DNA of 64,000 nt from Mytilus californianus (GCF_021869535.1 NW_026262679.1:19220001-19284000); one strand, 5' to 3'; counted from the stretch's first letter, positions 447 to 22,367 are shown. Numbers and translations: made by a program. The notes: generated from the letters alone by a model not told the origin.

Positions 447-989
447 TAATATATATAATAAGCAAGTCTAAAAGGGTACATCTCCAAAAAAATAGTAAAA
501 TCATGAACAAATATTAAATAATTCGGATAACTAATATCCTTTATCAGTAAGATGTCAAATGATTCTTTTCTTGACATGTGGTAGTCCTGTACTGAAGCCT
601 GAGTTACAGGAAACAAGTGATGGTAGGGACTCATTTTATGTTTTTTTGTTATTTATCGATGGCTATTTTATATGTGTGTGTGTGTGTGTGTGTGACATTT
701 TAATCTGTATAATTGGTCATTTTGCGTTGTTTATCATACCGCGAAACTTTGGCCCATTTTTTTTTGTTTCGTTCAATTTGTTTGTAAGTGTTTGTTTGGT
801 ACTATCAAAAAAAAAAATACTGAATCAGACTTTCAGATCATTTCAAACAAATAAGGCCCATAAAGAAATACTGAACTAAAAAATTCTATTTATAGAAACT
901 TTAATAACAAAAATATAGAAACGGATTAACAAAACATAAACTGTAATAAAACAAGTCAATAGCGACTATTATAACATAACATTAAATCA

Positions 990-1250
990 TATCACAGTTA
1001 CTTTGTATCACAGATAGTTGTATCACAGTTATTTTGTATCACAGTTTGTTGTATCAGTTACCATGTTGTATCACAGTTAGTTGTATCACAGTTTCTTGTA
1101 TCACAGTTACTTTGTATCACAGTTACTTTGTATCACCTTGTATCACAGGTACCTTGCATTACAGTTACTTTGTTGTATCATAGTTAAATTTAACATATCA
1201 CAGTAAGGTTGTTGTATTACAATTATTTATTTAATATCACAGTTACTTTG
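990..1250 (-). repeat. 15-16 bp satellite in the cdc25 copy 1 3' flank; array of K-box (CTGTGATA) motifs on the mRNA strand
   Basis: Plus-strand unit TATCACAG + variable 7-8 nt spacer; 11 perfect TATCACAG counted by eye; begins ~100 nt after the stop codon. Confidence 0.9.
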
Positions 1251-1346
1251 ATCTATAGCACTATATTAGCTTTCCGTAAAATGTTTTCTTTTGAGTAGTA
1301 CTACCATAAGAAACATTTTCAATCACTTTTCATAAAAAAGTTCATA

Positions 1347-2120
1347 TTACAAGCGTATGGATCTTTTTGCATGTCGCCGTTTTTCTCCAGCGGTCCAAGA
1401 CTTTGACTTTGCCCGGAAATGACGTAAATCGGACGAGTGTTCATAATGGATCATTGGTTTGTAATTAATTGGATCGCAATACATCGACTTTTCGTTGAAA
1501 AAAGATTTGTATCCTTCATCCAGTAAATATACTTCTGGGTAGTTCAAGGCAGGATAGTTTTCTTTATTCAATTCACGATCTTTACTTCTCAGGAATCGCA
1601 TCATCTTTGGGCCTCGTTCTGATGAAAACTCACAGTGAAAAACAAGAATTTGCTTCTCTGCAGTCGACTGTTGAAGAAGTTCCAAGATGGATGCATGTAA
1701 ATACCTGTTTTCGGCACCTTCGATGTGACCTCCTTCGAATTCATACGGGTATCTGCAGTCGATGATTCGATAACTATTGATGACGTTTTTGTATCTACCG
1801 TCAATGACATCAGAAAGTGTCTGTGGAGAGATGCTTTTCAGATCCTGGTGTTTTCCTGCAACTGATGGAAGCGAGTAGGTTCTGCTGCAATCAGCAATTA
1901 AGTCTTCATTCAGTGTAAGTTTGTTGACGACAGTCTTTAAATCTCTGCAAGCTTTAACGGAATCACCCTGGTGATATTTTGTCAACGACCTCTTGGCACC
2001 AGGAGTCATAAAAGAAATAGTGTCTGCCTTTGGTTTTGTTGCTTTGAATCCAAAGGGTTCCATGTCACTAATCATCTGGTAACATTCGTCATCGTCCTGA
2101 AATAGTTGTTTAGGGAGCAT
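1347..2120 (-). CDS. cdc25: Cdc25 M-phase inducer phosphatase, intronless short form (257 aa), copy 1
   Basis: IIDCRYPYEFEGGHI, active site FHCEFSSERGP (HCx5R), YPEVYLL..GYK.FF, C-terminal FRAKSKSW; single ORF; A-rich start context ACAAAAATG. Confidence 0.97.
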   Translation of the reverse strand: MLPKQLFQDDDECYQMISDMEPFGFKATKPKADTISFMTPGAKRSLTKYHQGDSVKACRDLKTVVNKLTLNEDLIADCSRTYSLPSVAGKHQDLKSISPQTLSDVIDGRYKNVINSYRIIDCRYPYEFEGGHIEGAENRYLHASILELLQQSTAEKQILVFHCEFSSERGPKMMRFLRSKDRELNKENYPALNYPEVYLLDEGYKSFFNEKSMYCDPINYKPMIHYEHSSDLRHFRAKSKSWTAGEKRRHAKRSIRL

Positions 2121-2400
2121 TTTTGTTGTGGTAGGTTACTTCACAAAAGTCGTGATTGAATTTGACTTTTTAAGGTAAAGCACGAATATTTATGGAGAAC
2201 GAACATTTTGACAAATCATAATTTTAAAGAACCGTGTTCACTTCATTACTCAGATCATTTCAGAATTAATCACTCGTTGTCTTTTGACCATAGCTTTGAC
2301 CTCTGATTAACCTTGTCAAAGATGAAAGCGCGGCTTATCATGGTTTGTCAAGATTTTTAATTAAAGTATAAGGCAATTAAGTTCAATGTTCAGCAGAAAC
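2121..2400 (-). promoter_or_regulatory. Putative cdc25 5'UTR/proximal promoter block
   Basis: About 250 bp upstream of the ATG stay near-identical even in diverged copy 4 (23259-23520), whereas more distal flank is much more diverged. Confidence 0.55.
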
Positions 2401-3048
2401 GATGATATATTTAATGTCTGAAAAAAGTTCACTTAATTAATGATACTTTTGTGTAATAATGAAAGACTAATTCAGTTTTTATATATGAAGTATTCCCATA
2501 CAATTTTTTTTTTTATTAAAATGAATAAATAAAATGAAAAGAAAATTTAAAATAAAAGAATAAATAATACAAAATAAAGTTGAAAAAAATAGCATAAATA
2601 TAACTGCTATAAATAAAATAAAATAACACTGTTTAAATAAAACTTGTTTTAAACCTTTATAGTAATAATTTTATTTATTTTTCAATTGTAGATTCTTAAA
2701 TATATAAATTGTTTATATGTATATCCAACAACATAAATAATGGTCCACTTTTTTCCTTATACAGAAGTTTCATAATTTTTTGTTTATGCAAAAAAACTAA
2801 CTTTAGTATGTTTTAAGCGTATTAACCTGGAAATTAATTTATGGGTTTATAAACAAGTTTTCGTTTTAGTGTCGACCTTCGTTGTGCTCGTCCAATTAAA
2901 AAAAAATATGAGTTATAATTAGACAATTTCAAATTTGTCATTAGAACAAACTTCGATAAGAAACTAGGCATAATTTTACTTTTCTATTTTTTTCAGATTT
3001 AAATTTACACCCGACATTTTCCTCTTTTCTTTTGTTTGTTTTAAATAT

Positions 3049-3368
3049 AAAAATAAGGAGATGTGGTGTGATTGCCAATGAGACAACCATCCACCAAAGT
3101 TCAAATGAAGTGGATGTAAGCAATTTTAGGCAACCGTACGGCCTTCAACAATGAGAAAAAACCAATACCGTAAAGTCGGCTATAAAAGACCCTACATGAA
3201 AGAAGATGAAACAATTCAAACGAGAAAACTAACGGCCTAATTTATAACAAAATTTACGAAAAACAAATATGACGGACATGAACCAACGACAACCACTGAA
3301 CTACGGGCTCCTGACTTGGGACAGGCACATAAAGAATGTGGCGGGTTTAAACATGTTTGTGAGCGCTC
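3049..3368 (+). mobile_element. Abundant interspersed repeat (AAAATAAGGAGATGTGG...GCCAATGAGACAAC family)
   Basis: Same sequence recurs across the window (10186, 17565, 30683, fragments at 4304, 4788, 28894, 31536; reverse copies at 46.3 and 58 kb); absent at the homologous site upstream of copy 4 (~24110). Confidence 0.75.
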
Positions 3369-5681
3369 AAAATTATCTTTTTAAGTAGTCAAAAGTTGGA
3401 ATTAAACAAAAATGTCCTTTTTACAAATGATATTTATGACTCCCAAACATTGTGTAAAAGTTTTGACTTTTTCAAACAAATTTTAAAAAGTTACATACAA
3501 AAGAAATAATTACTCCATAGAAATTAATGTTGTTCTTTTGTTTCTTTTGTTGTTCAGTATATAATGTCGTGCTATATACTTGTCTTGCAGTCTTCTAAGA
3601 TCAATTCATGGACCTTTTGATAATATGGAGTATTATCTGAAATTAGAAGTACGTGTGTCCAGTGACTGTAGTAATACCTTCTTATTTTTGTAACGAGAGC
3701 ATATACACTTTTTTATACGTATAGCAACATAAGAGAGACGACCATTTAATTCTCATGGTTAAAAAAAAGGGGTGGGGTATTTGTGGATTTTTTTTCTTGG
3801 CTGGTGAAATATTCATTTTTCCTTTTGCTAGTCCGGCTTTGTTTTGATAGCAGTAACCAACATTGCTTTGAAACCTTCACCTACATGTTAGACCACATAG
3901 ATTTTACAGTGTTTTCCAACGTTGGCAGTACGTGGTACTCTTCGAACATTTGGTATTGAATTTAATGAATATCCCTATCCGATTGAATGTGATTGCGTAT
4001 AAAAGCAGATAAAAAGACGCCCTCCAGTCTTAGAATTGAAAATTCTTCCAGATAAGATAAGAAATCTCAAAATTTTGCGAAGAAGAATTCATTGATTTTG
4101 AGCAATACTCTTAAACGATTGTCTTAGTGGTCTAAATGAATTGTTTTATTTAAGGTAGTAACTCACAGTTGCCATTCTGGTTGACATTATTGAATTCAGA
4201 AACATGCGAAAAGAGAGAACTGTAGTTAGAAATGAGAAAAACATTGGGTCAAAATTATTTTTGAGCCATTATATAACAGCTTGGTCATTCCCGAACCCAT
4301 TATAAAAATAAGGAAATGTGGTATGATTGCCAATGAGACAACTATCCACCAGAGTTCAAATTATCCAAAATAAGTAATAACCATAACTTAAATTGCATGA
4401 CTATTTTCCCAAATCGGTGAAAAACTTACTATGGCACTAATTTAATTTCCCTCAAGTTACCAGTAATATATATAGCGGTTATTTAAGTAATCTCGCATCG
4501 CCAAAAACAAATGACACATGAAAAGCAAACGGTGAAGTTTTGGACAGCGGAAGCATGTTTTCTATATTGTTGTGATAAGATGTAATATTTGCCACTGAAC
4601 GTTAAACGAAATTCAACATCACCGTCATCATTGTTCTGTTATGATTCGAACGCAAATGATGAATCTTATGTAGGATAAAACACATGTCTGGGGGACTATA
4701 CAGAGATCGTCAGTCCAGTAGCATCTAGTCGAATAGTAGATATGAAGATTGTCAGTCCAGTAGCACCTAATCGGATAGTACATACATAAAATAAGGAGCA
4801 GTAGTGTGATTGCCAATAAGACAACTACAAAAGAGTCCAGATATTAAAACTAATAATAAAAACTAAAGGTACACAGTTATATACGTCACGAATGTGATAC
4901 GAAAATGAACCCTGCTTTGTGTTGAAAATATATTGAATTTGTAAATCACTTGCAATGAAATCGCTTCAAGAACTATTTTCTATATTTCCAGATTTGAAAG
5001 ACGCATGTTGATATAGTACATCTTACTTTATCGAAAAGTTTTTGATTTGTTTTCGTGACTTTTAGCCAGAAAATACCTTTTTATGTATTACATTCCTTCT
5101 ATAAAAAGAGGCAGAAGTTACCAAAGAGATAGTCGACCTCATAAGTTGAATACAAGCTGATAGCGCCATGGTAAACACGAAAAATGATGAACAGACCAAC
5201 AACTGTCTTCAAAATACAACATAGAAAAATAAATACTGAACAACACGAACCTCATCAAAATCCGGAGGTGATAACAGGTGCTCTATAAGGGTAGTCAGAT
5301 CCTCCTCCACATGTGGCACCATCGTTTTGTACAAGTTCGATGAAAAGTCTCATTCGGAGATGTTGCATACAGAAGAATGAATCCTCTAAAGAATCCATCC
5401 TACTATTTGTTTTTTTATTCTTGTATACTTTTAAACTAAAGATAGTCATAGTCACCAAAATCTGTCAAGAGAGTCTTTTATTTTGTTAAAAAAACCCATT
5501 GCAATATCGATTTTTAATCAAATACAAAGGTAACGGCATGGTTAGTAACATTATCAACCTTTACGACAGACAAAACAGCTAATCTGAAAGGTACACCATC
5601 TACTTGCCACTATACATCATGTACTGTGTTACAACCCTTGATTAAGCTGAACTGGAACTAACAAAAGCTATGTTATGTAAA

Positions 5682-5780
5682 GCCTAGTCGAGTGGTCTAT
5701 GGCGCTGGACACAGTGCAGGAGTTCGAATCCCGCTGAGGGAAGAACAAAAATTTACTAACATATTTCGGCTAAATTTGAT
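5682..5780 (+). mobile_element. tRNA-derived SINE head (internally deleted)
   Basis: A-box-like TGGTCTATGGCGCTGG and B-box GAGTTCGAATCCC; the homolog at 21516 has 21 extra nt between the boxes. Confidence 0.7.
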
Positions 5781-5884
5781 ATGAAGGATATATAAGTCAT
5801 GGTGTTTGCCCTGTATAACCACGGGATGTCCGATGGAGAACGTCTTTCGTAAATTTGTCTCATGTTTAGAAGTATATATATATG

Positions 5885-6540
5885 AAACATTTTAATCTGT
5901 ATAATTTGTCATTCTGCATTGTTTATTATACCGCGAAACTTTTTTTGTGTTTTTATTGTTTCGTTCAATTTGTTTGAAAGTGTTTGTTTGGTTTTATTAA
6001 AAAATTGAAATACTGAATAGACTTTTAGATCATTTCAAACAGATTAAGCGCATAAAGAAATACTTAACTAAATAATTCTATTAACAGAAACTTTAATAAC
6101 AAAAATATAGAAACGGATTAACAAAACATAAAACAAGTCCAATAGCGACTATTATAACATAACATTAACTATATTATATCACAGCTACTTTAATTCACAG
6201 TTACTTTGTATCACAGCTACTTTGTATCACAGTAAGTTTGAATCACAGCTTCTTTGTATCACAGTTAGTTTATATCACAGCTACTTTGTATCACAGCTAC
6301 TTTGTATCACAGTTAGTTTGCATCACAGCTACTTTGTATCACAGTTAGTTTATATCACAGCTACTTTGTATCACAGCTACTTTGTATCACAGTTACTTTG
6401 TATCACACTTTGATGTATCACAGTTAGTTCGTATCACAGTTACCTGGCATCAAAGTTACTTTGTTGTATCATAGTTAAATTTGTCATATCACAGTAAGGT
6501 TGTTGTATCACAACTTTTTATATAATATCACGGTTACTTT
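5885..6540 (-). repeat. Orphan copy of the copy-4-type cdc25 3' flank including a K-box satellite (6177-6540), with no CDS attached
   Basis: Near-identical to 21744-22370 but breaks at GGTTACTTT into a SINE fragment instead of continuing to the cdc25 stop. Confidence 0.85.
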
Positions 6541-6680
6541 GGTCTAGAGAGCTGAAAATGAGGCTAAGCGATTGGTGCTGTAGTGTATCTAAGGTGTCAG
6601 TTCAAATCCCGTTGAGGGACAAAAATTTGTAAGCATAAAAATCTAATTCTTAACACTGTTGGGTTTAATTTTCAGACTTA
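6541..6680 (+). mobile_element. 5'-truncated tRNA-derived SINE followed by (TA)n
   Basis: GGTCTAGAG...GTTCAAATCCCG...CAAAAATTTG...TAACACTGTTGGG; same family as 5682 and 25020. Confidence 0.7.
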
Positions 6681-6695
6681 TATATATATATATAT

Positions 6696-7475
6696 TGTGG
6701 CATACCATCTTTTCCACAAGTTTATTGTTTTCTGTTTGGCATTAAATTAATATTAAGATCCATTTTGTAAGATCTGGTGATCAATTTATTTGGCAATCGC
6801 CAATGGCAGTCAGCAGGGTTTAAGAACATCAGTTGTTCGACCTGTTAGTCAAATGCGTTTTGTTAAAATAGACTTTTTCACTTTTTTTGGTCTTTTGGAA
6901 ATTGTTGTTTGTGCTGTATTTAGACCCCTTTATCAAGAAATTTGTTTTACATGCACACGTATAAAAATTGCGGTTTTTATCCAACGCAATCATATGTTTG
7001 AACGTTTGCCTTCGGGTTTATATGATCCGTTCATCCTATTTCGACTCTTCAAAATTCAAGAGTCAATCCCAAATTGACGTAAATTATATGGCCTTCCAAA
7101 TACCGTTTCGATTCCTAACATCACTGAAGAGACATTAATTGTCGAAATCCGGATATGGTGTACAAATTTTTGCACCTCATGTTTGCGGTATACCATCTTT
7201 TCCGCAAGTTTTTTGTTTTCTATTTGGTATTAGATTAAAATTAAGATCCATTTTGTTACATCTGTGATCCGTTTATTTGGCAATCGCTATGGCATTCAGC
7301 AGGGTTTAAGATCATCCGTTGTTCGACCTGCTAGTCAAATGCGTTTTGTTAAAATATACTTTTTCACTTTTTTGGTCTTTCGGAAAATGTTGTTTGTGCT
7401 GTATTTAGACCCCTCTAACAAGAAATTTGTTTTGCATGTACACGTATAAAAATTGCGGTTTTTATCCAACGCAAT
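6696..7475 (+). mobile_element. Non-LTR retrozyme-like tandem repeat (~1.6 monomers of ~488 bp)
   Basis: ATACCATCTTTTCC recurs at 6702 and 7190; hammerhead at 7118-7161; flanked by TA runs on both sides. Confidence 0.8.
7118..7161 (+). ncRNA. Type I hammerhead ribozyme, intact core
   Basis: ACATCA-CTGAAGA-GACATTAATTGTC-GAAA-TCCGG-ATA/TGGTGT; predicted cleavage after 7155. Confidence 0.85.
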
Positions 7476-8126
7476 ATTATATATAATAAGCAAGTCTAAA
7501 AGGGTACATCTCCAAAAAAATAGTAAAATCATGAACAAATATTAAATATTTCGGATAACTAATATCCTTCATCAGTAAGATGTCAAATGATTCTTTTCTT
7601 GACATGTGGTAGTCGAACTGAAATAATAATCTTGAACGTCATACAAATTATCACAAATCAATACGCTGGTAATTTTTTTCAATATTGATGTTTGGATGGA
7701 GGAATAAATTGCTTAATACTATGAGAGTCCTGTACTGAAGCCTGAGTTACAGGAAACAAGTGATGGTAGGGACTCATTTTATGTTTTTTGTTATTTATCG
7801 TTGGCTATTATATGTGTGTGTGTGTGTGTGTGACATTTTAATCTGTATAATTGGTCATTCTGCGTTGTTTATCATACCGCGAAACTTTGGCCCTTTTTTT
7901 TTTGTTTCGTTCAATTTGTTTGTAAGTGTTTGTTTGGTACTATCAAAAAAAAAATACTGAATCAGACTTTCAGATCATTTCAAACAAATAAGGCCCATAA
8001 AGAAATACTGAACTAACAAATTCTATTTATAGAAACTTTAATAACAAAAATATAGAAACGGATTAACAAAACATAAACTGTAATAAAACAAGTCAATAGC
8101 GACTATTATAACATAACATTAAATCA

Positions 8127-8387
8127 TATCACAGTTACTTTGTATCACAGATAGTTGTATCACAGTTATTTTGTATCACAGTTTGTTGTATCAGTTACCA
8201 TGTTGTATCACAGTTAGTTGTATCACAGTTTCTTGTATCACAGTTACTTTGTATCACAGTTACTTTGTATCACCTTGTATCACAGGTACCTTGCATTACA
8301 GTTACTTTGTTGTATCATAGTTAAATTTAACATATCACAGTAAGGTTGTTGTATTACAATTATTTATTTATTATCACAGTTACTTTG
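8127..8387 (-). repeat. K-box satellite in the cdc25 copy 2 3' flank
   Basis: Near-identical to 990-1250. Confidence 0.9.
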
Positions 8388-8483
8388 ATCTATAGCACTA
8401 TATTAGCTTTCCGTAAAATGTTTTCTTTTGAGTAGTACTACCATAAGAAACATTTTCAATCACTTTTCATAAAAAAGTTCATA

Positions 8484-9257
8484 TTACAAGCGTATGGATC
8501 TTTTTGCATGTCGCCGTTTTTCTCCAGCGGTCCAAGACTTTGACTTTGCCCGGAAATGACGTAAATCGGACGAGTGTTCATAATGGATCATTGGTTTGTA
8601 ATTAATTGGATCGCAATACATCGACTTTTCGTTGAAAAAAGATTTGTATCCTTCATCCAGTAAATATACTTCTGGGTAGTTCAAGGCAGGATAGTTTTCT
8701 TTATTCAATTCACGATCTTTACGTCTCAGGAATCGCATCATCTTTGGGCCTCGTTCTGATGAAAACTCACAGTGAAAAACAAGAATTTGCTTCTCTGCAG
8801 TCGACTGTTGAAGAAGTTCCAAGATGGATGCATGTAAATACCTGTTTTCGGCACCTTCGATGTGACCTCCTTCGAATTCATACGGGTATCTACAGTCGAT
8901 GATTCGATAACTATTGATGACGTTTTTGTATCTACCGTCAATGACATCAGAAAGTGTCTGTGGAGAGATGCTTTTCAGATCCTGGTGTTTTCCTGAAACT
9001 GATGGAAGCGAGTAGGTTCTGCTGCAATCAGCAATTAAGTCTTCATTCAGTGTAAGTTTGTTGACGACAGTCTTTAAATCTCTGCAAGCTTTAACGGAAT
9101 CACCCTGGTGATATTTTGTCAACGACCTCTTGGCACCAGGAGTCATAAAAGAAATAGTGTCTGCCTTTGGTTTTGTTGCTTTGAATCCAAAGGGTTCCAT
9201 GTCACTAATCATCTGGTAACATTCGTCATCGTCCTGAAATAGTTGTTTAGGGAGCAT
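8484..9257 (-). CDS. cdc25: Cdc25 phosphatase, intronless short form (257 aa), copy 2
   Basis: Same motifs; differs from copy 1 by two residues (VAGK>VSGK, LRSK>LRRK). Confidence 0.97.
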   Translation of the reverse strand: MLPKQLFQDDDECYQMISDMEPFGFKATKPKADTISFMTPGAKRSLTKYHQGDSVKACRDLKTVVNKLTLNEDLIADCSRTYSLPSVSGKHQDLKSISPQTLSDVIDGRYKNVINSYRIIDCRYPYEFEGGHIEGAENRYLHASILELLQQSTAEKQILVFHCEFSSERGPKMMRFLRRKDRELNKENYPALNYPEVYLLDEGYKSFFNEKSMYCDPINYKPMIHYEHSSDLRHFRAKSKSWTAGEKRRHAKRSIRL

Positions 9258-10185
9258 TTTTGTTGTGGTAGGTTACTTCACAAAAGTCGTGATTGAATTT
9301 GACTTTCTAAGGTAAAGCACGAATATTTATGGAGAACGAACATTTTGACAAATCATAATTTTAAAGAACCGTGTTCACTTCATTACTCAGATCATTTCAG
9401 AATTAATCACTCGTTGTCTTTTGACCATAGCTTTGACCTCTGATTAACCTTGTCAAAGATGAAAGCGCGGCTTATCATGGTTTGTCAAGATTTTTAATTA
9501 AAGTATAAGGCAATTAAGTTCAATGTTCAGCAGAAACGATGATATATTTAATGTCTGAAAAAAGTTCACTTAATTAATGATACTTTTGTGTAATAATGAA
9601 AGACTAATTCAGTTTTTATATATGAAGTATTCCCATACAATTTTTTTTTTATTAAAATGAATAAATAAAATGAAAAGAAAATTTAAAATAAAAGAATAAA
9701 TAATACAAAATAAAGTTGAAAAAAATAGCATATATATAACTGCTATAAATAAAATAAAATAACACTGTTTAAATAAAACTTGTTTTAAACCTTTATAGTA
9801 ATAATTTTATTTATTTTTCAATTGTAGATTCTTAAATATATAAATTGTTTATATGTATATCCAACAACATAAATAATGGTCCACTTTTTTCCTTATACAG
9901 AAGTTTCATAATTTTTTGTTTATGCAAAAAAACTAACTTTAGTATGTTTTAAGCGTATTAACCTGGAAATTAATTTATGGGTTTATAAACAAGTTTTCGT
10001 TTTAGTGTCGACCTTCGTTGTGCTCGTCCAATTAAAAAAAAAATATGAGTTATAATTAGACAATTTCAAATTTGTCATTAGAACAAACTTCGATAAGAAA
10101 CTAGGCATAATTTTACTTTTCTATTTTTTTCAGATTTAAATTTACACCCGACATTTTCCTCTTTTCTTTTGTTTGTTTTAAATAT

Positions 10186-10505
10186 AAAAATAAGGAGATG
10201 TGGTGTGATTGCTAATGAGACAACCATCCACCAAAGTTCAAATGAAGTGGATGTAAGCAATTTTAGGCAACCGTACGGCCTTCAACAATGAGAAAAAAAC
10301 AATACCGTATAGTCGGCTATAAAAGACCCTACATGAAAGAAGATGAAACAATTCAAACGAGAAAACTAACGGCCTAATTTATAACAAAATTTACGAAAAA
10401 CAAATATGACGGACATGAACCAACGACAACCACTGAACTACGGGCTCCTGACTTGGGACAGGCACATAAAGAATGTGGCGGGTTTAAACATGTTTGTGAG
10501 CGCTC
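10186..10505 (+). mobile_element. Interspersed repeat, duplicate of 3049-3368
   Basis: Near-identical sequence at the same position in unit 2. Confidence 0.75.
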
Positions 10506-12993
10506 AAAATTATCTTTTTAAGTAGTCAAAAGTTGGAATTAAACAAAAATGTCCTTTTTACAAATGATATTTATGACTCCCAAACATTGTGTAAAAGTTT
10601 TGACTTTTTCAAACAAATTTTAAAAAGTTACATACAAAAGAAATAATTACTCCATAGAAATTAATGTTGTTCTTTTGTTTCTTTTGTTGTTCAGTATATA
10701 ATGTCGTGCTATATACTTGTCTTGCAGTCTTCTAAGATCAATTCATGGACCTTTTGATAATATGGAGTATTATCTGAAATTAGAAGTACGTGTGTCCAGT
10801 GACTGTAGTAATACCTTCTTATTTTTGTAACGAGAGTATATACACTTTTTTATACGTATAGCAACATAAGAGAGACGACCATTTAATTCTCATGGTTAAA
10901 AAAAAGGGGTGGGGTATTTGTGGATTTTTTTTCTTGGCTGGTGAAATATTCATTTTTCGTTTTACTAGTCCGGCTTTGTTTTGATAGCAGTAACCAACAT
11001 TGCTTTGAAACCTTCACCTACATGTTAGACCACATAGATTTTACAGTGTTTTCCAACGTTGGCAGTACGTGGTACTCTTCGAACATTTGGTATTGAATTT
11101 AATGAATATCCCTATCCGATTGAATGTGATTGCGTATAAAAGCAGATAAAAAGACGCCCTCCAGTCTTAGAATTGAAAATTCTTCCAGATAAGATAAGAA
11201 ATCTCAAAATTTTGCGAAGAAGAATTCATTGATTTTGAGCAATACTCTTAAACGATTGTCTTAGTGGTCTAAATGAATTGTTTTATTTAAGGTAGTAACT
11301 CACAGTTGCCATTCTGGTTGACATTATTGAATTCAGAAACATGCGAAAAGAGAGAACTGTAGTTAGAAATGAGAAAAACATTGGGTCAAAATTATTTTTG
11401 AGCCATTATATAACAGTTTGGTCATTCCCGAACCCATTATAAAAATAAGGAAATGTGGTATGATTGCCAATGAGACAACTATCCACCAGAGTTCAAATTC
11501 TGTTGCATGACTATTTTCCCAAATCGGTGAAAAACTTACTATGGCACTAATTTAATTTCCCTCAAGTTACCAGTAAATATATAGCGGTTATTTAAGTAAT
11601 CTCGCATCGCCAAAAACAAATGACACATGAAAAGCAAACGGTGAAGTTTTGGACAGCGGAAGCATGTTTTCTATATTGTTGTGATAAGATGTAATATTTG
11701 CCACTGAACGTTAAACGAAATTCAACATCACCGTCATCATTGTTCTGTTATGATTCGAACGCAAATGATGAATCTTATGTAGGATAAAACACATGTCTGG
11801 GGGACTATACGGAGATCGTCAGTCCAGTAGCATCTAGTCGAATAGTAGATATGAAGATTGTCAGTCCAGTAGCACCTAATCGGATAGTACATACATAAAA
11901 TAAGGAGCAGTAGTGTGATTGCCAATAAGACAACTACAAAAGAGTCCAGATATTAAAACTAATAATAAAAACTAAAGGTACACAGTTATATACGTCACGA
12001 ATGTGATACGAAAATGAACCCTGCTTTGTGTTGAAAATATATTGAATTTGTAAATCACTTGCAATGAAATCGCTTCAAGAACTATTTTCTATATTTCCAG
12101 ATTTGAAAGACGCATGTTGATATAGTACATCTTACTTTATCGAAAAGTTTTTGATTTGTTTTCGTGACTTTTAGCCAGAAAATACCTTTTTATGTATTAC
12201 ATTCCTTCAGTAAAAAGAGGCAGAAGTTACCAAAGAGATAGTCGACCTCATAAGTTGAATACAAGCTGATAGCGCCATGGTAAACACGAAAAATGATGAA
12301 CAGACCAAGAACTGTCTTCAAAACACAACATAGAAAAATAAATACTGAACAACACGAACCTCATCAAAATCCGGGGGTGATAACAGGTGCTCTATAAGGG
12401 TAGTCAGATCCTCCTCCACATGTGGCACCATCGTTTTGTACAAGTTCGATGAAAAGTCTCATTCGGAGATGTTGCATACAGAAGAATGAATCCTCTAAAG
12501 AATCCATCCTACTATTTGTTTTTTTATTCTTGTATACTTTTAAACTAAAGATAGTCATAGTCACCAAAATCTGTCAAGAGAGTCTTTTATTTTGTTAAAA
12601 AAACCCATTGCAATATCGATTTTTAATCAAATACAAAGGTAACGGCATGGTTAGTAACATTATCAACCTTTACGACAGACAAAACAGCTAATCTGAAAGG
12701 TACACCATCTACTTGCCACTATACATCATGTACTGTGTTACAACCCTTGATTAAGCTGAACTGGAACTAACAAAAGCTATGTTATGTAAAGCCTAGTCGA
12801 GTGGTCTATGGCGCTGGACACAGTGCAGGAGTTCGAATCCCGCTGAGGGAAGAACAAAAATTTACTAACATATTTCGGCTAAATTTGATATGAAGGATAT
12901 ATAAGTCATGGTGTTTGCCCTGTATAACCACGGGATGTCCGATGGAGAACGTCTTTCGTAAATTTGTCTCATGTTTAGAAGTATATATATATG

Positions 12994-13633
12994 AAACATT
13001 TTAATCTGTATAATTTGTCATTCTGCATTGTTTATTATACCGCGAAACTTTTTTTGTGTTTTTATTGTTTCGTTCAATTTGTTTGAAAGTGTTTGTTTGG
13101 TTTTATCAAAAAATTGAAATACTGAATAGACTTTTAGATCATTTCAAACAGATTAAGCGCATAAAGAAATACTTAACTAAATAATTCTATTAACAGAAAC
13201 TTTAATAACAAAAATATAGAAACGGATTAACAAAACATAAAACAAGTCCAATAGCGACTATTATAACATAACATTAACTATATTATATCACAGCTACTTT
13301 AATTCACAGTTACTTTGTATCACAGCTACTTTGTATCACAGTAAGTTTGAATCACAGCTTCTTTGTATCACATTTAGTTTATATCACAGCTACTTTGTAT
13401 CACAGTTAGTTTGCATCACAGCTACTTTGTATCACAGTTAGTTTATATCACAGCTACTTTGTATCACAGCTACTTTGTATCACAGTTACTTTGTATCACA
13501 CTTTGATGTATCACAGTTAGTTCGTATCACAGTTACCTGGCATCAAAGTTACTTTGTTGTATCATAGTTAAATTTGTCATATCACAGTAAGGTTGTTGTA
13601 TCACAACTTTTTATATAATATCACGGTTACTTT
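12994..13633 (-). repeat. Second orphan copy-4-type 3' flank with K-box satellite (13286-13633)
   Basis: Same breakpoint into a SINE (GGTTACTTT|GGTCTAGAG) as at 6540. Confidence 0.85.
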
Positions 13634-13790
13634 GGTCTAGAGAGCTGAAAATGAGGCTAAGCGATTGGTGCTGTAACTAGTGTATCAAAGGTGTCAGTTC
13701 AAATCCCGTTGAGGAACAAAAATTTGTAAGCATAAAAATCTAATTCTTAACACTGTTGGGTTTAATTTTCAGACTTATATATATATATAT

Positions 13791-14570
13791 TGTGGCATAC
13801 CATCTTTTCCACAAGTTTATTGTTTTCTGTTTGGCATTAAATTAATATTAAGATCCATTTTGTAAGATCTGGTGATCAATTTATTTGGCAATCGCCAATG
13901 GCAGTCAGCAGGGTTTAAGAACATCAGTTGTTCGACCTGTTAGTCAAATGCGTTTTGTTAAAATAGACTTTTTCACTTTTTTTGGTCTTTTGGAAATTGT
14001 TGTTTGTGCTGTATTTAGACCCCTTTATCAAGAAATTTGTTTTACATGCACACGTATAAAAATTGCGGTTTTTATCCAACGCAATCATAGGTTTGAACGT
14101 TTGCCTTCGGGTTTATATGATCCGTTCATCCTATTTCGACTCTTCAAAATTCAAGAGTCAATCCCAAATTGACGTAAATTATATGGCCTTCCAAATACCG
14201 TTTCGATTCCTAACATCACTGAAGAGACATTAATTGTCGAAATCCGGATATGGTGTACAAATTTTTGCACCTCATGTTTGCGGTATACCATCTTTTCCGC
14301 AAGTTTTTTGTTTTCTATTTGGTATTAGATTAAAATTAAGATCCATTTTGTTACATCTGTGATCCGTTTATTTGGCAATCGCTATGGCAGTCAGCAGGGT
14401 TTAAGATCATCCGTTGTTCGACCTGCTAGTCAAATGCGTTTTGTTAAAATATACTTTTTCACTTTTTTGGTCTTTCGGAAAATGTTGTTTGTGCTGTATT
14501 TAGACCCCTCTAACAAGAGATTTGTTTTGCATGTACACGTATAAAAATTGCGGTTTTTATCCAACGCAAT
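13791..14570 (+). mobile_element. Non-LTR retrozyme-like tandem repeat
   Basis: Copy of 6696-7475 at offset 7095. Confidence 0.8.
14213..14256 (+). ncRNA. Type I hammerhead ribozyme, intact core
   Basis: Identical to 7118-7161. Confidence 0.85.
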
Positions 14571-15227
14571 ATTATATATAATAAGCAAGTCTAAAAGGGT
14601 ACATCTCCAAAAAAATAGTAAAATCATGAACAAATATCAAATATTTCGGATAACTAATATCTTTCATCAGTAAGATGTCAAATGATTCTTTTCTTGACAT
14701 GTGGTAGTCGAACTGAAATAATAATCTTGAACGTCATACAAATTATCACAAATCAATACGCTGGTAATTTTTTTCAATATTGATGTTTGGATGGAGGAAT
14801 AAATTCCTTAATACTATGAGAGTCCTGTACTGAAGCCTGAGTTACAGGAAACAAGTGATGGTAGGGATTCATTTTATGTTTTTTGTTATTTATCGTTGGC
14901 TATTATATATGTGTGTGTGTGTGTGTGTGACATTTTAATCTGTATAATTGGTCATTCTGCGTTGTTTATCATACCGCGAAACTTTGGCCCTTTTTTTTTT
15001 GTTTCGTTCAATTTGTTTGTAAGTGTTTGTTTGGTTCTATCAAAAATAAAAGAAAGACTGAATCAGACTTTCAGATCATTTCAAACAAATAAGGCCCATA
15101 AAGAAATACTGAACTAAAAAATTCTATTTATAGAAACTTTAATAACAAAAATATAGAAACGGATTAACAAAACATAAACTGTAATAAAACAAGTCAATAG
15201 CGACTATTATAACACAACATTAAATCA

Positions 15228-15759
15228 TATCACAGCTATTTTGTATCACAGTTTGTTGTATCAGTTACCATGTTGTATCACAGTTAGTTGAATCACAGTT
15301 AGTTGTATCACAGTTAGTTGTATCACAGTTACTTTGTATCACAGTTTGTTGTATCACAGTTAGTTGTATCACAGTTACTTTGTATCACAGTTACCTTGTA
15401 TCACCTTGTATCACAGGTACCTTGCATTACAGTTACTTTGTTGTATCATAGTTAAATTTAACATAGTCACAGTAAGGTTGTTGTATCACAATTATTTATT
15501 TAATATCACAGTTACTTTGTATCACCTTGTATCACAGGTACCTTGCATTACAGTTACTTTGTTGTATCATAGTTAAATTTAACATATCACAGTAAGGTTG
15601 TTGTATCACAATTATTTATTTAATATCACAGTTACTTTGTATCACCTTGTATCACAGGTACCTTGCATTACAGTTACTTTGTTGTATCATAGTTAAATTT
15701 AACATATCACAGTAAGGTTGTTGTATTACAATTATTTATTTAATATCACAGTTACTTTG
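15228..15759 (-). repeat. Expanded K-box satellite in the cdc25 copy 3 3' flank, with a ~120-bp higher-order triplication
   Basis: 17 perfect TATCACAG counted by eye; TCACCTTGTATCACAGGTACC recurs at 15401, 15522 and 15642. Confidence 0.9.
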
Positions 15760-15856
15760 ATCTATAGCACTATATTAGCTTTCCGTAAAATGTTTTCTTT
15801 TGAGTAGTACTACCATAAGAAACATTTTCAATCACTTTTCATAAAAAAAGTTCATA

Positions 15857-16630
15857 TTACAAGCGTATGGATCTTTTTGCATGTCGCCGTTTTTCTCCAG
15901 CGGTCCAAGACTTTGACTTTGCCCGGAAATGACGTAAATCGGACGAGTGTTCATAATGGATCATTGGTTTGTAATTAATTGGATCGCAATACATCGACTT
16001 TTCGTTGAAAAAAGATTTGTATCCTTCATCCAGTAAATATACTTCTGGGTAGTTCAAGGCAGGATAGTTTTCTTTATTCAATTCACGATCTTTACTTCTC
16101 AGGAATCGCATCATCTTTGGGCCTCGTTCTGATGAAAACTCACAGTGAAAAACAAGAATTTGCTTCTCTGCAGTCGACTGTTGAAGAAGTTCCAAGATGG
16201 ATGCATGTAAATACCTGTTTTCGGCACCTTCGATGTGACCTCCTTCGAATTCATACGGGTATCTGCAGTCGATGATTCGATAACTATTGATGACGTTTTT
16301 GTATCTACCGTCAATGACATCAGAAAGTGTCTGTGGAGAGATGCTTTTCAGATCCTGGTGTTTTCCTGCAACTGATGGAAGCGAGTAGGTTCTGCTGCAA
16401 TCAGCAATTAAGTCTTCATTCAGTGTAAGTTTGTTGACGACAGTCTTTAAATCTCTGCAAGCTTTAACGGAATCACCCTGGTGATATTTTGTCAACGACC
16501 TCTTGGCACCAGGAGTCATAAAAGAAATAGTGTCTGCCTTTGGTTTTGTTGCTTTGAATTCAAAGGGTTCCATGTCACTAATCATCTGGTAACATTCGTC
16601 ATCGTCCTGAAATAGTTGTTTAGGGAGCAT
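15857..16630 (-). CDS. cdc25: Cdc25 phosphatase, intronless short form (257 aa), copy 3
   Basis: Same motifs; one residue differs from copy 1 (PFGF>PFEF). Confidence 0.97.
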   Translation of the reverse strand: MLPKQLFQDDDECYQMISDMEPFEFKATKPKADTISFMTPGAKRSLTKYHQGDSVKACRDLKTVVNKLTLNEDLIADCSRTYSLPSVAGKHQDLKSISPQTLSDVIDGRYKNVINSYRIIDCRYPYEFEGGHIEGAENRYLHASILELLQQSTAEKQILVFHCEFSSERGPKMMRFLRSKDRELNKENYPALNYPEVYLLDEGYKSFFNEKSMYCDPINYKPMIHYEHSSDLRHFRAKSKSWTAGEKRRHAKRSIRL

Positions 16631-17564
16631 TATTGTTGTGGTAGTTTACTTCACAAAAGTCGTGATTGAATTTGACTTTTTAAGGTAAAGCACGAATATT
16701 TATGGAGAACGGACATTTTGACAAATCACAATTTCAAAGAACCGTGTTCACTTCATTACTCAGATCATTTCAGAATTAATCACTCGTTGTCTTTTGACCA
16801 TAGCTTTGACCTCTGATTAACCTTGTCAAAGATGAAAGCGCGGCTTATCATGGTTTGTCAAGATTTTTAATTAAAGTATAAGGCAATTAAGTTCAATGTT
16901 CAGCAGAAACGATGATATATTTAATGTCTGAAAAAAGTTCACTTAATTAATGATACTTTTGTGTAATAATGAAAGACTAATTCAGTTTTTATATATGAAA
17001 TATTCCCATACAATTTTTTTTTTATTAAAATGAATAAAGAAAATGAAAAGAAAATTTAAAATAAAAGAATAAATAATACAAAATAAAGTTGAAAAAAATA
17101 GCATAAATATAACTGCTATAAATAAAATAAAATAACACCATTTAAATAAAACTTGTTTTAAACCTTTATAGTAATACTTTTATTTATTTTTCAATTGTAG
17201 ATTCTTAAATACATAAATTGTTTATATATGTATATTCAACAACATAAATAATGGTCCACTTTTTTCCTTATACAGAAGTTTCATATTTTTTTGTTGTATG
17301 CAAAAAAACTAACTTTAGTATGTTTTAAGCGTATTAACCTGGAAATCAATTTATGGGTTTATAAACAAGTTTTCGTTTTAATGTCGACCTTCGTTGTGCT
17401 CGTCCAATTTAAAAAAAAAAGAGTTATAATTAGACAATTTCAAATTTGTCATTAGAACAAACTTCGATAAGAAACTAGGCATAATTTTACTTTTCTATTT
17501 TTTCAGGATTAAATTTACACCCGACATTTTCCTCTTTTCTTTTGTTTGTTTTAAATACATGTAT

Positions 17565-17888
17565 AAAAATAAGGAGATGTGGTGTGATTACCAATGAGAC
17601 AACCATCCACCAAAGTTCAAATGAAGTGGATGTAAGCAATTATAGGCAACCGTAGTGGCTTCCAACAACTGAGAAAAAACCCATACCGTATAGTCGGCTA
17701 TAAAAGGCCCTACATGAAAGAAGGTGAAACAATTCAAACGAGAAAACTAACGGCCTAATTTATAACAAAACTATTTACGAAAAACAAATATGACGGACAT
17801 GAACCAACGACAACCACTGAACTACAGGCTCCTGACTTGGGACAGGCACATAAAGAATGTGGCGGGGTTAAACATGTTTGTGAGCGCT
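17565..17888 (+). mobile_element. Interspersed repeat, homolog of 3049-3368
   Basis: Same family and position, more diverged than units 1 and 2. Confidence 0.75.
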
Positions 17889-19489
17889 CAAAATTATCCT
17901 TTTAAGTAGTCAAAAGTTGGAATTAAACAAAAATGTCCTTTTTACAAATGATATTTATGACTCCCAAACATTGTGTAAAAGTTTTGACTTTTTCAAACAA
18001 ATTTTAAAAAGTTACATACAAAAGAAATAATTACTCCATAGAAATTAATGTTGTTCTTTTGTTTCTTTTGTTGTTCAGTATATAATGTCGTGCTATATAC
18101 TTGTCTTGCAGTCTTCTAAGATTAATTCATGGACCTTTTGATAATATGGAGTATTATCTGAAATTAGAATCACGTGTGTCCAGTGACTGTAGTAATACCT
18201 TCTTATTTTTACAACGAGAGTATATACACTTTTTATACGTATAGCACATAAGAATGACGACCATTTAATTCTCATGGTTAATAAAAGGGGGTGGGGTATT
18301 TGTGGATTTTTTTTCTTGGCTGGTGAAATATTAATTTTTCCTTTTGCTAGTCCGGCTTTGTTTTGATAGCAGTAACCAACATTGCTTTGAAACCTTGACC
18401 TACATGTTAGACCACATAGATTTTACAGGGTTTTCCAACGTTGGCAGTACGTGGTACTCTCCGAACATTTGGTATTGAATTTAATGAGTATCCCTATCCG
18501 ATTGAATGTGATTGCGTATAAAAGCAGCTAAAAAGACGCCCTCCAGTTTTAGAATTGAAAATTCTTCCAGATAAGATAAGAAATCTCAAAATTTTGCGAA
18601 GTAGAATTCATTGATATTGGGCAGTACTTTTAAACGATTGTCATAGTGGTCTAAATGAATTGTTTTATTCAAGGAAGTAACTCACAGTTGCCATTCTGGT
18701 TGACAAACCATTATTGAATTCAGAAACATGCGAAAAAAGAGAACTGTAGTTAGAAATGAGAAAAACATTGGGTCAAAATTATTTTTGAGCGATTATATAA
18801 CAGCTTGGTCATTCCCGAACTCATTCATGATAAAAATAAGGAGATGTGGTATGATTGCCAATGAGACAACTATCCACCAGAGTTCAAATTATCCAAAATA
18901 TGAATACCCATAACTTATATTGCATGACTATTTTCCCAGATCGGTGAAAAACTTACTATGGCACTAATTTAATTTCCCTCAAGTTACCAGTATATATATA
19001 TAGCGGTTATTTAAGTAATCTCGCATCGCCAAAAACAAATGACACATGAAAAGAAAACGGTGAAGTTTGGGTTAGCAGAAGCATGTTTCTATATTGTCTT
19101 GATAAGTATGTAATATTTGCCACTGGACGTTAAACGAAATTCAACATCACCGTCATCATTTTTCTGTTATGATTCGAACGCAAATGATGAATCTTATGTA
19201 GGATAAAACACATGTCTGGGTGACTATACGGAGATCGTCAGTCCAGTAGCATCTAGTCGAATAGTAGATATGAAGATTATCAGTCCAGTAGCACCTAATC
19301 GGATAGTACATACATAAAATAAGGAGCAGTAGTGTGATTGCCAATAAGACACTTACACAAAAGTCAAAATGACAAAATTTATAATAAAAACTAATGGTAC
19401 ACAGCTCCCTCACAAGTAAAAACCCATAACTGTAAAATATTAAAGCATACTGATGTTTTTGGTGGAGACATTACCACGTGTTTAAAAAT

Positions 19490-20587
19490 AAATCGTCAGA
19501 GGTTCCGCGGAAACCTGTGTCTCGCCTGCGATTGCTGCTGTCAGTGTAAAAGTGTTATGTTGACCTAAAACGTGAGTCCATTTATCAGTAAAATACAGAA
19601 TAAAAAAAAAAATCAAACCTTTTCTTTAGATGCTATTTTGGCCTTGACGATGAGCTTTTATGCAAGTTTCATAACAATCCATGGAGGTTTACAAATTTAT
19701 CATGTACATAAAATTTAATCCCAGACTGTCTGTAAATGTTAACTGTAAAAAATGAAGTCCATCCTTCAGAAAAATACTACAAATGAAAAAAATATATTTT
19801 CAAAGGTTTGCTTCAGACATTATCTCTTAATCATTAAATAGCTACTGCCAAAGTTTCATAAAACTCTATGAAGGTTTGACAAAGTAATTGATGTGTAACA
19901 AACTTTAACCCCAGACTGTATCTACTTGTTAACTGTAAAAAAAACAAGTCCATTTTTCAGTAAAATACGGAAAACTGAAAATAAATATTTCCAAAATGTT
20001 GCTCTGGATACTATATTTTGGTTATAAACAAGCTTCAGTCCAAATTTCATAAATTTCCATGAAGCTTTGACAAAGTTATTGAAGACTAAAAAACTTTAAC
20101 CTCAGACTGAGTCTGAGTGTAAACTGTAAAAAAAGTCTATTTATCAGTAAAATACGATAAAATGAAAATAAATGTTTTCGAAATTTTGCTCTGGATACTG
20201 TCTTTTGGTCATAAACAAGCTTCTGTACAAATTTTATAAAACTCCATGAAGGTTTGACAAAGTTGTTGATGACTGAAAAACTTTAACCTCAGACAAAATC
20301 TGAAGTTAACTGTAAAAAAAACAAACAAAGTCCATTTATTATTAAAATACGGAAAAATGAAAATAGATATTTTCAAAATTTTGCCCTGGATACAGTAGTT
20401 TGGTCATAAACAAGCTTCTGTCCCAATTTCATAAAATTCCATGTAGGTTTGACAAAGTTATTGATGTCCAGAAAAACTTTAACCACAGACTGAACTTAAA
20501 TGTTGACGCCGCCGACACCGACGACAACGGAATCTAGGATCGCTTTGTCTCGCTTTTGCAAAATAAATTTCGCAGGCTCGACAAAAA
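19490..20587 (+). mobile_element. HINE-type (Helentron-associated) non-autonomous element with ~190-bp internal tandem repeats
   Basis: Subterminal inverted repeat GTCTCGCCTGCGA (19519) / TCGCAGGCTCGAC (20570); AACTGTAAAA recurs at 19741, 19931, 20122, 20308; GACGCC/GACACC microsatellite before a 3' hairpin. Confidence 0.65.
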
Positions 20588-21515
20588 TTGTTTCTGTTGA
20601 AGGGTTGTCTTAGAAACAGATATCTGCACGCGTTGTATTTTACCAACTATATAATAATTCTTCTTCGATCTAATTTAAACTATAAATAGAGGAAGATTTG
20701 GTATATACGTCACGAATGTGATACGAAAATGAACCCTGCTTTGTGTTGAAAATATATTGAATTTGTAAATCACTTGCAATGAATCGCTTCATGAATTATT
20801 TTCTATATTTCCAGATTTGAAAGACGCATGTTGATATAGTACATCTTACTTTATCGAAAAGTTTTTGATTTGTTTTCGTGACTTTTAGCCAGAAAATACC
20901 GTTTTATGTATTACATTCCATCTATAAAAAAAAGGCAGAAGTTACCAAAGAGATAGTCGACCTCATAAGTCGAATACAAGCTGATAGCGCCATGGTAAAC
21001 ACGAAAAATGATGAAAAGACCAACAACTGTCTTCAAAACACAACATAGAAAAATAAATTCTGAACAACACGAACCTCATCAAAATCCGGAGGTGATCACA
21101 GGTGCTCTATAAGGGTAGTCAGATCCTTCTCCACATGTGGCACCATCGTTTTGCACATGTAAGTACAAGTTCGATGAAAAGTCTCATTCTGAGATGTTGC
21201 ATACAGAAGAATGAATCCTCTAAAGCATCCATCCTACTATTTGTTTTTTAGTCTTGCATACTTTTAAACTAAAGATAGTCATAGTCACCAAAATCTTTCA
21301 AGAGAGTCTTTTATTTTTTTTAAAAAAAAACATTGTATTATCGATTTTTAATCAAATACAAAGGTAACGGCATGGTTAGTAACATTATCAACCTTTACGT
21401 CAGACAAAACAGCTAATCTGAAAGGTACACCATCTACTTGCCACTATACATCATGTACTGTGTTACAACCCTTGATTAAGCTGAACAGGAACTATCAAAA
21501 GCTATGTCATGTAAA

Positions 21516-21635
21516 GCCGAGTCGAGTGGTCTATGGCGCTGGACACAGTGCAGGCAGTGATGTCACAGAAGCAGGAGTTCGAATCCCGCTGAGGGAAGAA
21601 CAAAAATTTGCTAACATATTTCGGCTAAATTTGAT
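21516..21635 (+). mobile_element. tRNA-derived SINE head
   Basis: A box TGGTCTATGGCGCTGG and B box GAGTTCGAATCCC. Confidence 0.7.
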
Positions 21636-22035
21636 ATGAAGGATATATAAGTCATGGTGTTTGCCCTGTATAACCACGGGTTGTCCGATGGAGAACGTCT
21701 TTCGTAAATTTGTCTCATGTTTAGAAGTATATATATATATATGAAACATTTTAATCTGTATAATTTGTCATTCTGCATTGTTTATTATACCGCGAAACCT
21801 TTTTGTGTTTTTATTGTTTCGTTCAATTTGTTTGAAAGTGTTTGTTTGGTTTTATTAAAAAATTGAAATACTGAATCAGACTTTTAGATCATTTTAAACA
21901 GATTAAGCGCATAAAGAAATACTTAACTAAATAATTCTATTAACAGAAACTTTAATAACAAAAATATAGAAACGGATTAACAAAACATAAAACAAGTCCA
22001 ATAGCGACTATTATAGCATAACATTAACTATATTA

Positions 22036-22367
22036 TATCACAGTTACTTTATATCACAGTTACTTTGTATCACAGCTACTTTGTATCACAGTAAGTTTGT
22101 ATCACAGCTACTTTGTATCACAGTTAGTTTATATCACAGCTACTTTGTATCACAGTTAGTTTGCATCACAGCTACTTTGTATCACAGTTAGTTTATATCA
22201 CAGCTACTTTGTATCACAGTTACTTTGTATCACACTTTGATGCATCACAGTTACTTTGTATCACAGTTACCTGGCATCAAAGTTACTTTGTTGTATGATA
22301 GTTAAATTTGTCATATCACAGTAAGGTTGTTGTATCACAACTTTTTATATAATATCAAAGTTACTTT
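22036..22367 (-). repeat. K-box satellite in the cdc25 copy 4 3' flank
   Basis: 13 perfect TATCACAG counted by eye plus several 7-mers; unit mostly TATCACAG(C/T)TACTTTG. Confidence 0.9.

Follow-up and report, generated by a model that had tools for sequence, protein, structure and literature searches.

The 64-kb window of Mytilus californianus DNA from assembly GCA_021869535.1 analysed here (the whole stretch of 64,000 nt, to which all coordinates refer unless they carry a locus number) holds a cluster of genes for a compact Cdc25 phosphatase, and behind each of them lies a tandem array of K boxes, candidate target sites for microRNAs (miRNAs) of the miR-2 family. Four minus-strand open reading frames (ORFs) with a Rhodanese/Cdc25 catalytic domain are found at 1347-2120, 8484-9257 and 15857-16630 (257 amino acids, aa, each) and at 22455-23258 (267 aa). 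The main coding exon of copy 1, stop codon included, spans 1347..2096 (-), follows an acceptor AG at 2097-2098 (tttcag) and encodes the motif HCEFSSERG; the equivalent exons of copies 2 and 3, placed from copy 1 through repeat offsets of 7137 and 14510 nt, occupy 8484..9233 (-) and 15857..16606 (-). Copy 4 (22455..23258, -; locus L003) is 90% identical to copy 1 at its 267 aa. Copies 1-3 each have, ~2.07 kb before the main exon, a start exon with 9 coding nt, ATGGCAACT followed by GT (4167..4175, 11304..11312 and 18686..18694, all -), which matches the RefSeq N-terminus MAT, the RefSeq proteins of these three copies beginning MAT/DDDECYQ. Given this start exon and the tttcag acceptor, the cdc25 copies are not strictly intronless. 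No further cdc25 coding sequence was found in the window by tblastn. The host protein matches Pfam PF00581 (Rhodanese, E = 1.8e-11), its active site HCEFSSERG (HCX5R) is invariant across the Cdc25 alignment, and its best database homologues are Mytilus proteins named 'M-phase inducer phosphatase'. We conclude from these similarities that the host is a Cdc25 dual-specificity phosphatase gene with an intact catalytic motif.

The window contains 79 matches to the octamer TATCACAG, where dinucleotide-preserving shuffles lead one to expect 2.55 ± 1.74 (maximum 7). All 79 matches are on the plus strand, so that the minus-strand cdc25 mRNAs read CUGUGAUA, and all but a single stray at 40086 (78/79) are grouped in six tandem arrays. 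Four of these are genic: A1 in the 3' flank of copy 1 (990..1242, -, 11 perfect CUGUGAUA in units of 15-16 nt), A2 behind copy 2 (8127..8379, -, 11 sites), A3 behind copy 3 (15228..15751, -, 17 sites) and C4 behind copy 4 (22036..22321, -, 13 sites). The other two, B1 (6177..6494, -, 14 sites) and B2 (13286..13587, -, 12 sites), are orphans with no gene of their own. The periods found by Tandem Repeats Finder are 15-16 nt and, at a higher order, 31, 32, 46 and 120; degenerate units start ~90 nt past the cdc25 stop, and the first perfect site follows at 107, 108 and 136 nt in copies 1, 3 and 4, respectively. A first-pass annotation made by eye from the bare sequence had described a 15-16 bp satellite beginning ~90-100 nt after every cdc25 stop and had counted 11, ~11, 17 and 13 sites per gene; both the layout and the counts (11, 11, 17 and 13 perfect 8-mers) are borne out, as is the sense orientation of the four genic arrays, but the two orphan arrays at 6177 and 13286 had escaped it. 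A special unit, CTTTGATG, which it placed near 22230, is present at ~22234, but within a unit whose K box is broken. Copy 3 has 17 sites and copies 1 and 2 have 11 because a 120-nt unit within A3 (15383-15759) has been triplicated at 98% identity, each copy containing four K boxes and one ATTAAATAAA.

The origin of the orphan arrays is apparent from the structure of the locus. Two tandem copies of a 7.1-kb segment, 98% identical, are present (583-8390 vs 7726-15523), and each comprises one full gene with its array plus the truncated 3' end of a copy-4-type gene. Orphan B1 is homologous to C4 and its downstream flank, with the cdc25 ORF and proximal untranslated region (UTR) absent: 4878-6540 matches 20702-22367, the 3' end of copy 4, at 93%. 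In the orphan arrays the homology to copy 4 ends exactly at the 5' edge of the array, and beyond it lies unrelated, repeat-like sequence. As truncated copy-4-type 3' ends, the orphan arrays are thus recent remnants and not independent satellites. Their use as a neutral control was considered and rejected, as at 93% identity to copy 4 they are too young.

The repeat that replaces the cdc25 ORF beside the orphan arrays carries hammerhead-like cores of two types, CTGAAGA with a GACA..TGTC stem and GAAA, and CTGATGA with a GGATA..TATCC stem and GAAA, at 304-327 (-), 7124-7147 (+), 14219-14242 (+), 7549-7575 (-) and 14644-14670 (-). No Rfam match was found at these cores even at E <= 1; if real, they would be of a minimal or dimeric, retrozyme or Penelope type.

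The placement of the arrays relative to polyadenylation signals suggests that they are transcribed as part of the message. In five of seven Mytilus flanks the first AATAAA/ATTAAA falls after the array, and the interval from stop to array end is free of both hexamers in M. coruscus, M. edulis, M. galloprovincialis, M. trossulus or copy 4 of M. californianus. A block TTATTAAAG containing a poly(A) hexamer, ~70-110 nt past the last K box, is invariant in the seven aligned Mytilus flanks; in the window its ATTAAA lies at 900..905 (-), ~85 nt 3' of A1, and the same block recurs at 6092-6097, 8037-8042, 13201-13206, 15138-15143 and 21951-21956. Related genes that lack an array likewise have a K box between the stop and the first ATTAAA. 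From these hexamer positions we infer that the mature mRNA carries the array within its 3'UTR. The stretch between array and ATTAAA also includes UUUUAU, which resembles a cytoplasmic polyadenylation element, in M. californianus (~925-945, -) and M. coruscus (L001 ~7165-7180); its conservation is weak, and M. edulis has UUUUGU in its place.

A function at the level of DNA, as an array of transcription-factor sites or a recombination hotspot, or an origin as a mobile-element fragment unrelated to the mRNA, would be in keeping with the position of the orphan arrays ~2 kb upstream of the next gene's start exon and with the hammerhead-like and short interspersed element (SINE)-like sequences that adjoin them. 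We consider this highly improbable, as the arrays are strictly in sense orientation to the ORF in every species and hold a fixed position between stop and poly(A) hexamer, while the orphan arrays derive by truncation from the copied 3' end of a gene.

The repeated motif can be assigned to a specific miRNA family. CTGTGATA is the reverse complement of TATCACAG, that is, of nt 1-8 of M. galloprovincialis mir-2c and mir-2d and of Crassostrea gigas miR-2a, 2b-1 and 2d, and constitutes a canonical 8mer site (a match to nt 2-8 plus an A opposite nt 1) for the miR-2 family, seed UAUCACAG. Reads of mir-2c (TATCACAGCCTGCTTTGATGAGCA) and mir-2d (TATCACAGCCTGCTTGGATCAGTT) are present among small RNAs sequenced from M. 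galloprovincialis haemocytes (PMC7773633, supplement), and the three C. gigas miRNAs share nt 1-8 (PMC4941716). The initial identification of the motif as the K box, the miR-2 seed match, thus extends to an exact match with miR-2 members sequenced in bivalves, including a Mytilus species.

Pairing beyond the seed, which had also been proposed, holds for a minority of unit types. The CAAAGTAG units pair through ~nt 9-11 and again up to ~nt 17, with one or two unpaired positions between, and form a duplex of ~-22 kcal/mol, a value reached by <=5% of shuffles in which the seed was kept; the duplex energy of CAAAGTAA units is borderline by the same test, and neither the other Mytilus spacers tested nor the 14-nt array of the related locus L089 (described below) paired better than such shuffles. 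One unit type, TATCACAGCTA-CTTTG on the plus strand, equals nt 1-11 plus nt 13-17 of oyster miR-2b-1. We treat this likeness as probable supplementary pairing in a subset of units, and not as evidence that the repeat arose from a miRNA gene. Full complementarity to one of the miR-2 tested was seen in no unit; even in the best, a position near nt 9-12 stays unpaired, and in most the pairing is limited to the seed. A general role as trigger of target-directed miRNA degradation was rejected, contiguous pairing to ~nt 17 being confined to CAAAGTAG and CAAAGTAA units with few scattered pairs beyond. A miRNA gene or hairpin cluster was rejected as well: Rfam returned no match at gathering score in the window and none at E <= 1 in 1-24000, there is no excess of folding, and with all arrays on one strand there is no inverted partner for a hairpin. 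The UTR is no more structured than its shuffles (fold z = +0.31), and the sites should therefore be accessible.

Orthologous arrays, all in sense orientation, are present in other mussels, so that the arrangement is conserved in five Mytilus species. M. coruscus has 8 perfect 8-mers, M. edulis 18, M. trossulus 23 with three additional 7mer-A1 sites, and M. galloprovincialis 6 in each of two assemblies; the array starts 52-123 nt past the stop in these four orthologues. The counts of 6, 18 and 23 amount to a ~four-fold change in copy number within the M. edulis species complex. At the same time, loss of the array was seen in no lineage of the array-bearing clade among these five species.

We asked how variation is distributed within the repeat unit. 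A wrap-around alignment covered 110 units, drawn from the non-redundant arrays of M. californianus and from M. coruscus and M. edulis. Of these, 72 have an intact 8-mer and 30 the commonest spacer, and intact K boxes are flanked by 21 distinct spacers. To describe the 8-mer as nearly invariant, as the first-pass annotation did, was therefore an overstatement, but its half of the unit does vary two to three times less than the spacer. A minimum-spanning tree of 63 distinct units, with M. trossulus and M. galloprovincialis added, places 63 steps in the spacer half and 30 in the K-box half (binomial p = 8e-4). Per position, the number of steps is 2.7 at t2-t7, ~7 at t1 and t8 and 7.9 in the spacer, i.e. 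the seed core changes ~3 times less than the spacer within arrays. The commonest K-box variant, TTGTGATA, retains a 7mer-A1 site. As judged from these alignments, variation within the unit follows the known hierarchy of importance of seed-site positions, a constraint which is statistical rather than absolute.

The K box is older than the repeat in which it is now embedded. In a tree of 48 compact Cdc25 proteins, with DNA fetched for at least one member of each mytilid subclade, a mytilid-only clade (support 98/92) divides into four subclades. Subclades i, ii and iv have a common start of the 3'UTR, consisting of the stop, ~30 nt, the motif TAGTGCTA, 8-15 nt and a K box; in the clade iii loci L089 and L004 K boxes come soon after the stop without the TAGTGCTA anchor. 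The site is ATGTGATA in L090 and L088 (clade i), CTGTGATA in L092b (clade iv) and CTATGATA in the tandem twin of the latter. L091, sister of the array clade, has two CTGTGATA 8-mers 17 nt apart. In the two clade iii loci, both non-Mytilus and from environmental assemblies, there are five sites with a 14-nt period and the spacer AAACTT (L089) and five dispersed sites, TTGTGATA, CTGTGATA, CTGTGATC, ATGTGATA and CTGTGATA, within 150 nt (L004). Non-Mytilus relatives therefore possess 2-5 K boxes with unrelated spacers, and L004, L089 and L091 fall in their own clade or on a sister branch of the Cdc25 tree. Paralogues that retain a K box at the same 3'UTR position share only ~55% protein identity, and across the four subclades the spacers have diverged where the K box has stayed in place.

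An unbiased k-mer count found ACTGTGAT and CTGTGATA to be the only 8-mers repeated in all these UTR classes, and five TGTGAT hexamers in 200 nt were reached in 0/5000 shuffles of either non-Mytilus flank. At 77 unrelated cdc25 loci from metagenomes only five K-box 7-mers were present in 27.6 kb, approximately the background level, which makes the association specific to the mytilid family; a general association of cdc25 with K boxes was rejected on these background counts (77-80 metagenome cdc25 loci). We conclude from the shared UTR layout that one K box at this position is ancestral to all the mytilid compact Cdc25 paralogues. Slippage or unequal exchange then raised the number to 6-23 in one clade; in relatives it reached 2-5, with other spacers. 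As the K box is older than the minisatellite and was multiplied repeatedly with different spacers, the concern that a seed match had arisen by chance inside a minisatellite, a look-elsewhere effect, is removed.

The motif TAGTGCTA is itself a second conserved element of these UTRs, located at ~1256-1262 (-) in copy 1 and at L090:1684-1691, L088:4849-4856, L092:10905-10912 and L091:1052-1059. The L091 UTR additionally carries TGGTGCTA, which would be a miR-29-type 8mer.

A sequence-specific RNA-binding protein, for instance a translational regulator of maternal mRNA, might recognise the repeated UGUGAUA in place of a miRNA. Cdc25 and cyclin messages are, as a matter of general knowledge, classic targets of 3'UTR regulators in oocytes, and the neighbouring conserved TAGTGCTA has no obvious miRNA match. 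In clams, several CDC25 probes change between stripped and spawned oocytes (PMC4254928). The conserved unit, however, comprises exactly the 8 nt of a miRNA site including its terminal A, and its variation follows seed rules. Nor does it fit the Pumilio element UGUANAUA: this candidate was rejected, the repeated core being CUGUGAUA followed by C or U, without A at position 4 and without an 8-nt register. We therefore regard recognition by such a protein as quite improbable.

Taken as a whole, the best explanation is probably that the 16-nt K-box minisatellite is a dense miR-2 control element of a Mytilus-specific clade of compact Cdc25, a reading in which we place moderate confidence. An array that has grown from a single site kept across the family is probably a real, if unusually dense, miRNA control element.

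Several observations weigh against this reading. Copies 1-3 of M. californianus have gained, closely behind the first K box and within the second unit, an ATTAAATAAA, and this sequence might end transcripts early, giving a short isoform with one site. The exact 257-aa product was present on no Logan or ENA transcript contig, the orthologous proteins being found only on genome assemblies. The K box is broken in ~35% of units, mostly by transitions, and the most decayed units are those nearest the stop, so that individual sites are weakly constrained. Much of the identity between 8-mers reflects recent amplification, for example the 15 near-identical units in M. trossulus. Finally, the orphan arrays hold as many sites as the genic array of copy 4, with the consequence that paralogues within the window are uninformative on selection.

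A rival account is neutral: the ancestral K box was perhaps functional, the expansion was due to slippage without added regulation, and the 8-mer looks constant because the copies are young. This account finds support in copy numbers that differ widely among very close species (6, 18 and 23 in the M. edulis complex), in extended stretches of near-identical units along with higher-order repeats that are 98% identical, in gene-less orphan arrays as intact as the genic ones, and in the ~35% of units whose K box is already broken. It fits poorly with spacers that vary two to three times more than the seed core, with the stronger constraint at t2-t7 than at t1 and t8, and with the 21 different spacers around intact K boxes. 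It also fails to account for multiplication of the K box with unrelated spacers in L089 (14-nt period), L004 (dispersed) and L091 (two sites), and for retention of the array by every lineage of the array clade. On balance we consider neutrality rather unlikely.

If the array is a miR-2 control element, miR-2-loaded Argonaute would bind many sites on each cdc25 message. Neighbouring miRNA sites cooperate at a spacing of roughly 13-35 nt. The 16-nt period is at the lower limit of this range, and it is therefore likelier that alternate units, rather than adjacent ones, are occupied together. Translation and stability of the compact Cdc25 message would thereby become very sensitive to the level of miR-2, and the phosphatase would be shut off sharply wherever miR-2 is present. 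Under this mechanism the repeat number could act as a fast-evolving dosage knob. The developmental stage at which it would operate, e.g. clearance of germline or maternal Cdc25 message, is a matter of speculation.

It may be, as a tentative and rather unlikely extension, that repeat number (6, 18 and 23, or 11-17 per M. californianus copy) serves as a rheostat for the removal of germline or maternal compact Cdc25 by miR-2, and that the multi-copy locus buffers free miR-2 at high expression. If so, differences in repeat number would contribute to differences between species in the timing of meiosis or early cleavage.

A related proposal would make Cdc25 repression secondary, the transcripts acting mainly as a miR-2 sponge or competing RNA that de-represses other K-box targets. 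The density of 78 sites in 22 kb is comparable to that of known sponges, there are several gene copies besides the orphan arrays, 6-23 8-mers are present per UTR, and the units, none of them fully complementary to the miR-2 tested, would not be sliceable. Sponge action would, however, call for an extremely abundant transcript, and the importance of the protein itself is evident from its intact catalytic motif and the conservation of the ORF. Furthermore, the ancestral condition, a single site in the mRNA of an ordinary coding gene, argues for target regulation having come first. We hold this main role to be improbable.

Parts of the arrangement have precedents. Work by Lai and Posakony reportedly established that K boxes in the 3'UTRs of the Drosophila E(spl)-C and Bearded genes are regulated by miR-2/6/11/13. 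The mussel sites are similar to these in the motif cUGUGAUa, the miRNA family, the sense 3'UTR location and the frequent presence of more than one copy per UTR. Unlike the one to few dispersed sites of fly UTRs, they form a tandem minisatellite of 6-23 perfect 8-mers, and whereas fly targets are Notch-pathway and pro-apoptotic genes that have been tested experimentally, the mussel target is Cdc25, known from sequence alone.

The circular RNA CDR1as (ciRS-7) bears ~70 miR-7 seed sites and is likewise an example of dozens of close seed matches to one miRNA without full complementarity. It is, however, a non-coding circle without a strict tandem repeat, while the mussel sites follow an intact coding sequence, presumably on a linear mRNA, and are due to recent repeat expansion. 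Schnall-Levin et al. (2011) are said to have found miR-181 or miR-23 sites multiplied in the coding regions of C2H2 zinc-finger repeats, where, similarly, tandem duplication multiplies one miRNA site and targeting is unusually strong. The zinc-finger sites lie in ORFs and are held in place by protein repeats; the mussel repeat is a non-coding 16-nt unit in which only the seed match is constant.

Developmental or cell-cycle regulators with more than one site for the same miRNA are also known from lin-14 with lin-4 (7 sites), lin-41 and HMGA2 with let-7, and hid with bantam, and in these classic cases repression is switch-like. Sites of the lin-14 type are dispersed, imperfect and stable in number over evolution, whereas the number in mussels shifts ~four-fold between sibling species.

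In Drosophila, zygotic miRNAs of the miR-309 cluster, among them the K-box miRNA miR-6, clear maternal transcripts, as does miR-430 in zebrafish; string and twine mRNAs are degraded at the mid-blastula transition. This is a plausible setting, Cdc25 messages being supplied maternally and cleared at a defined stage, and for the mussel the comparison is one of analogy only. Clam oocytes carry several CDC25 transcripts (PMC4254928).

The K-box motif, the miR-2 family, the multi-site UTR principle, the density of CDR1as and the multiplication of sites by zinc-finger repeats are thus all already known. To our knowledge, the other natural examples in which many perfect sites for a single miRNA form an array come mainly from a small number of non-coding sponges, and what is new is that a minisatellite of perfect 8-mers, itself non-coding, follows the coding sequence of a cell-cycle gene. 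The sequence comparisons add, as further new elements, a genus-wide conservation combined with hypervariable copy number and an array whose descent can be traced to one conserved site; control of Cdc25 by miR-2 would, in lophotrochozoans, be a new connection as well. A full-text literature search found no paper linking cdc25 with miR-2 or the K box, or describing such an array, which agrees with the remark in the first-pass annotation that no prior description was known. A screen for miRNA-site clusters in human was designed to discard those that stem from repeats (PMC6108476, a paper that also mentions CDR1as), and such arrangements may therefore be under-reported. Closely related mussel species offer a natural series of site numbers in which the effects of site multiplicity and spacing on miRNA repression can be tested.

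The window contains other tandem repeats, all unrelated to the K-box unit: a 187-195 bp repeat x 4.4 at 19663-20494 (between copies 3 and 4), a 67-bp satellite x 14 (35621-36819) and x 6 (39100-39498), and a 161-bp repeat x 4.7 at 44054-44800. Outside it, the RefSeq model XP_052106143 at L088:4001-6892 (M. californianus chromosome JAKFGE010000001.1) seems to be mis-spliced, with its true C-terminus spliced away; the single-exon ORF of L088, homologous to L090, ends near 4826-4832 and is followed by TAGTGCTA, ATGTGATA and ATTAAA. A common SINE-like repeat with 77% identity is located downstream of cdc25 at L004:1290-1440 and L089:2110-2375.

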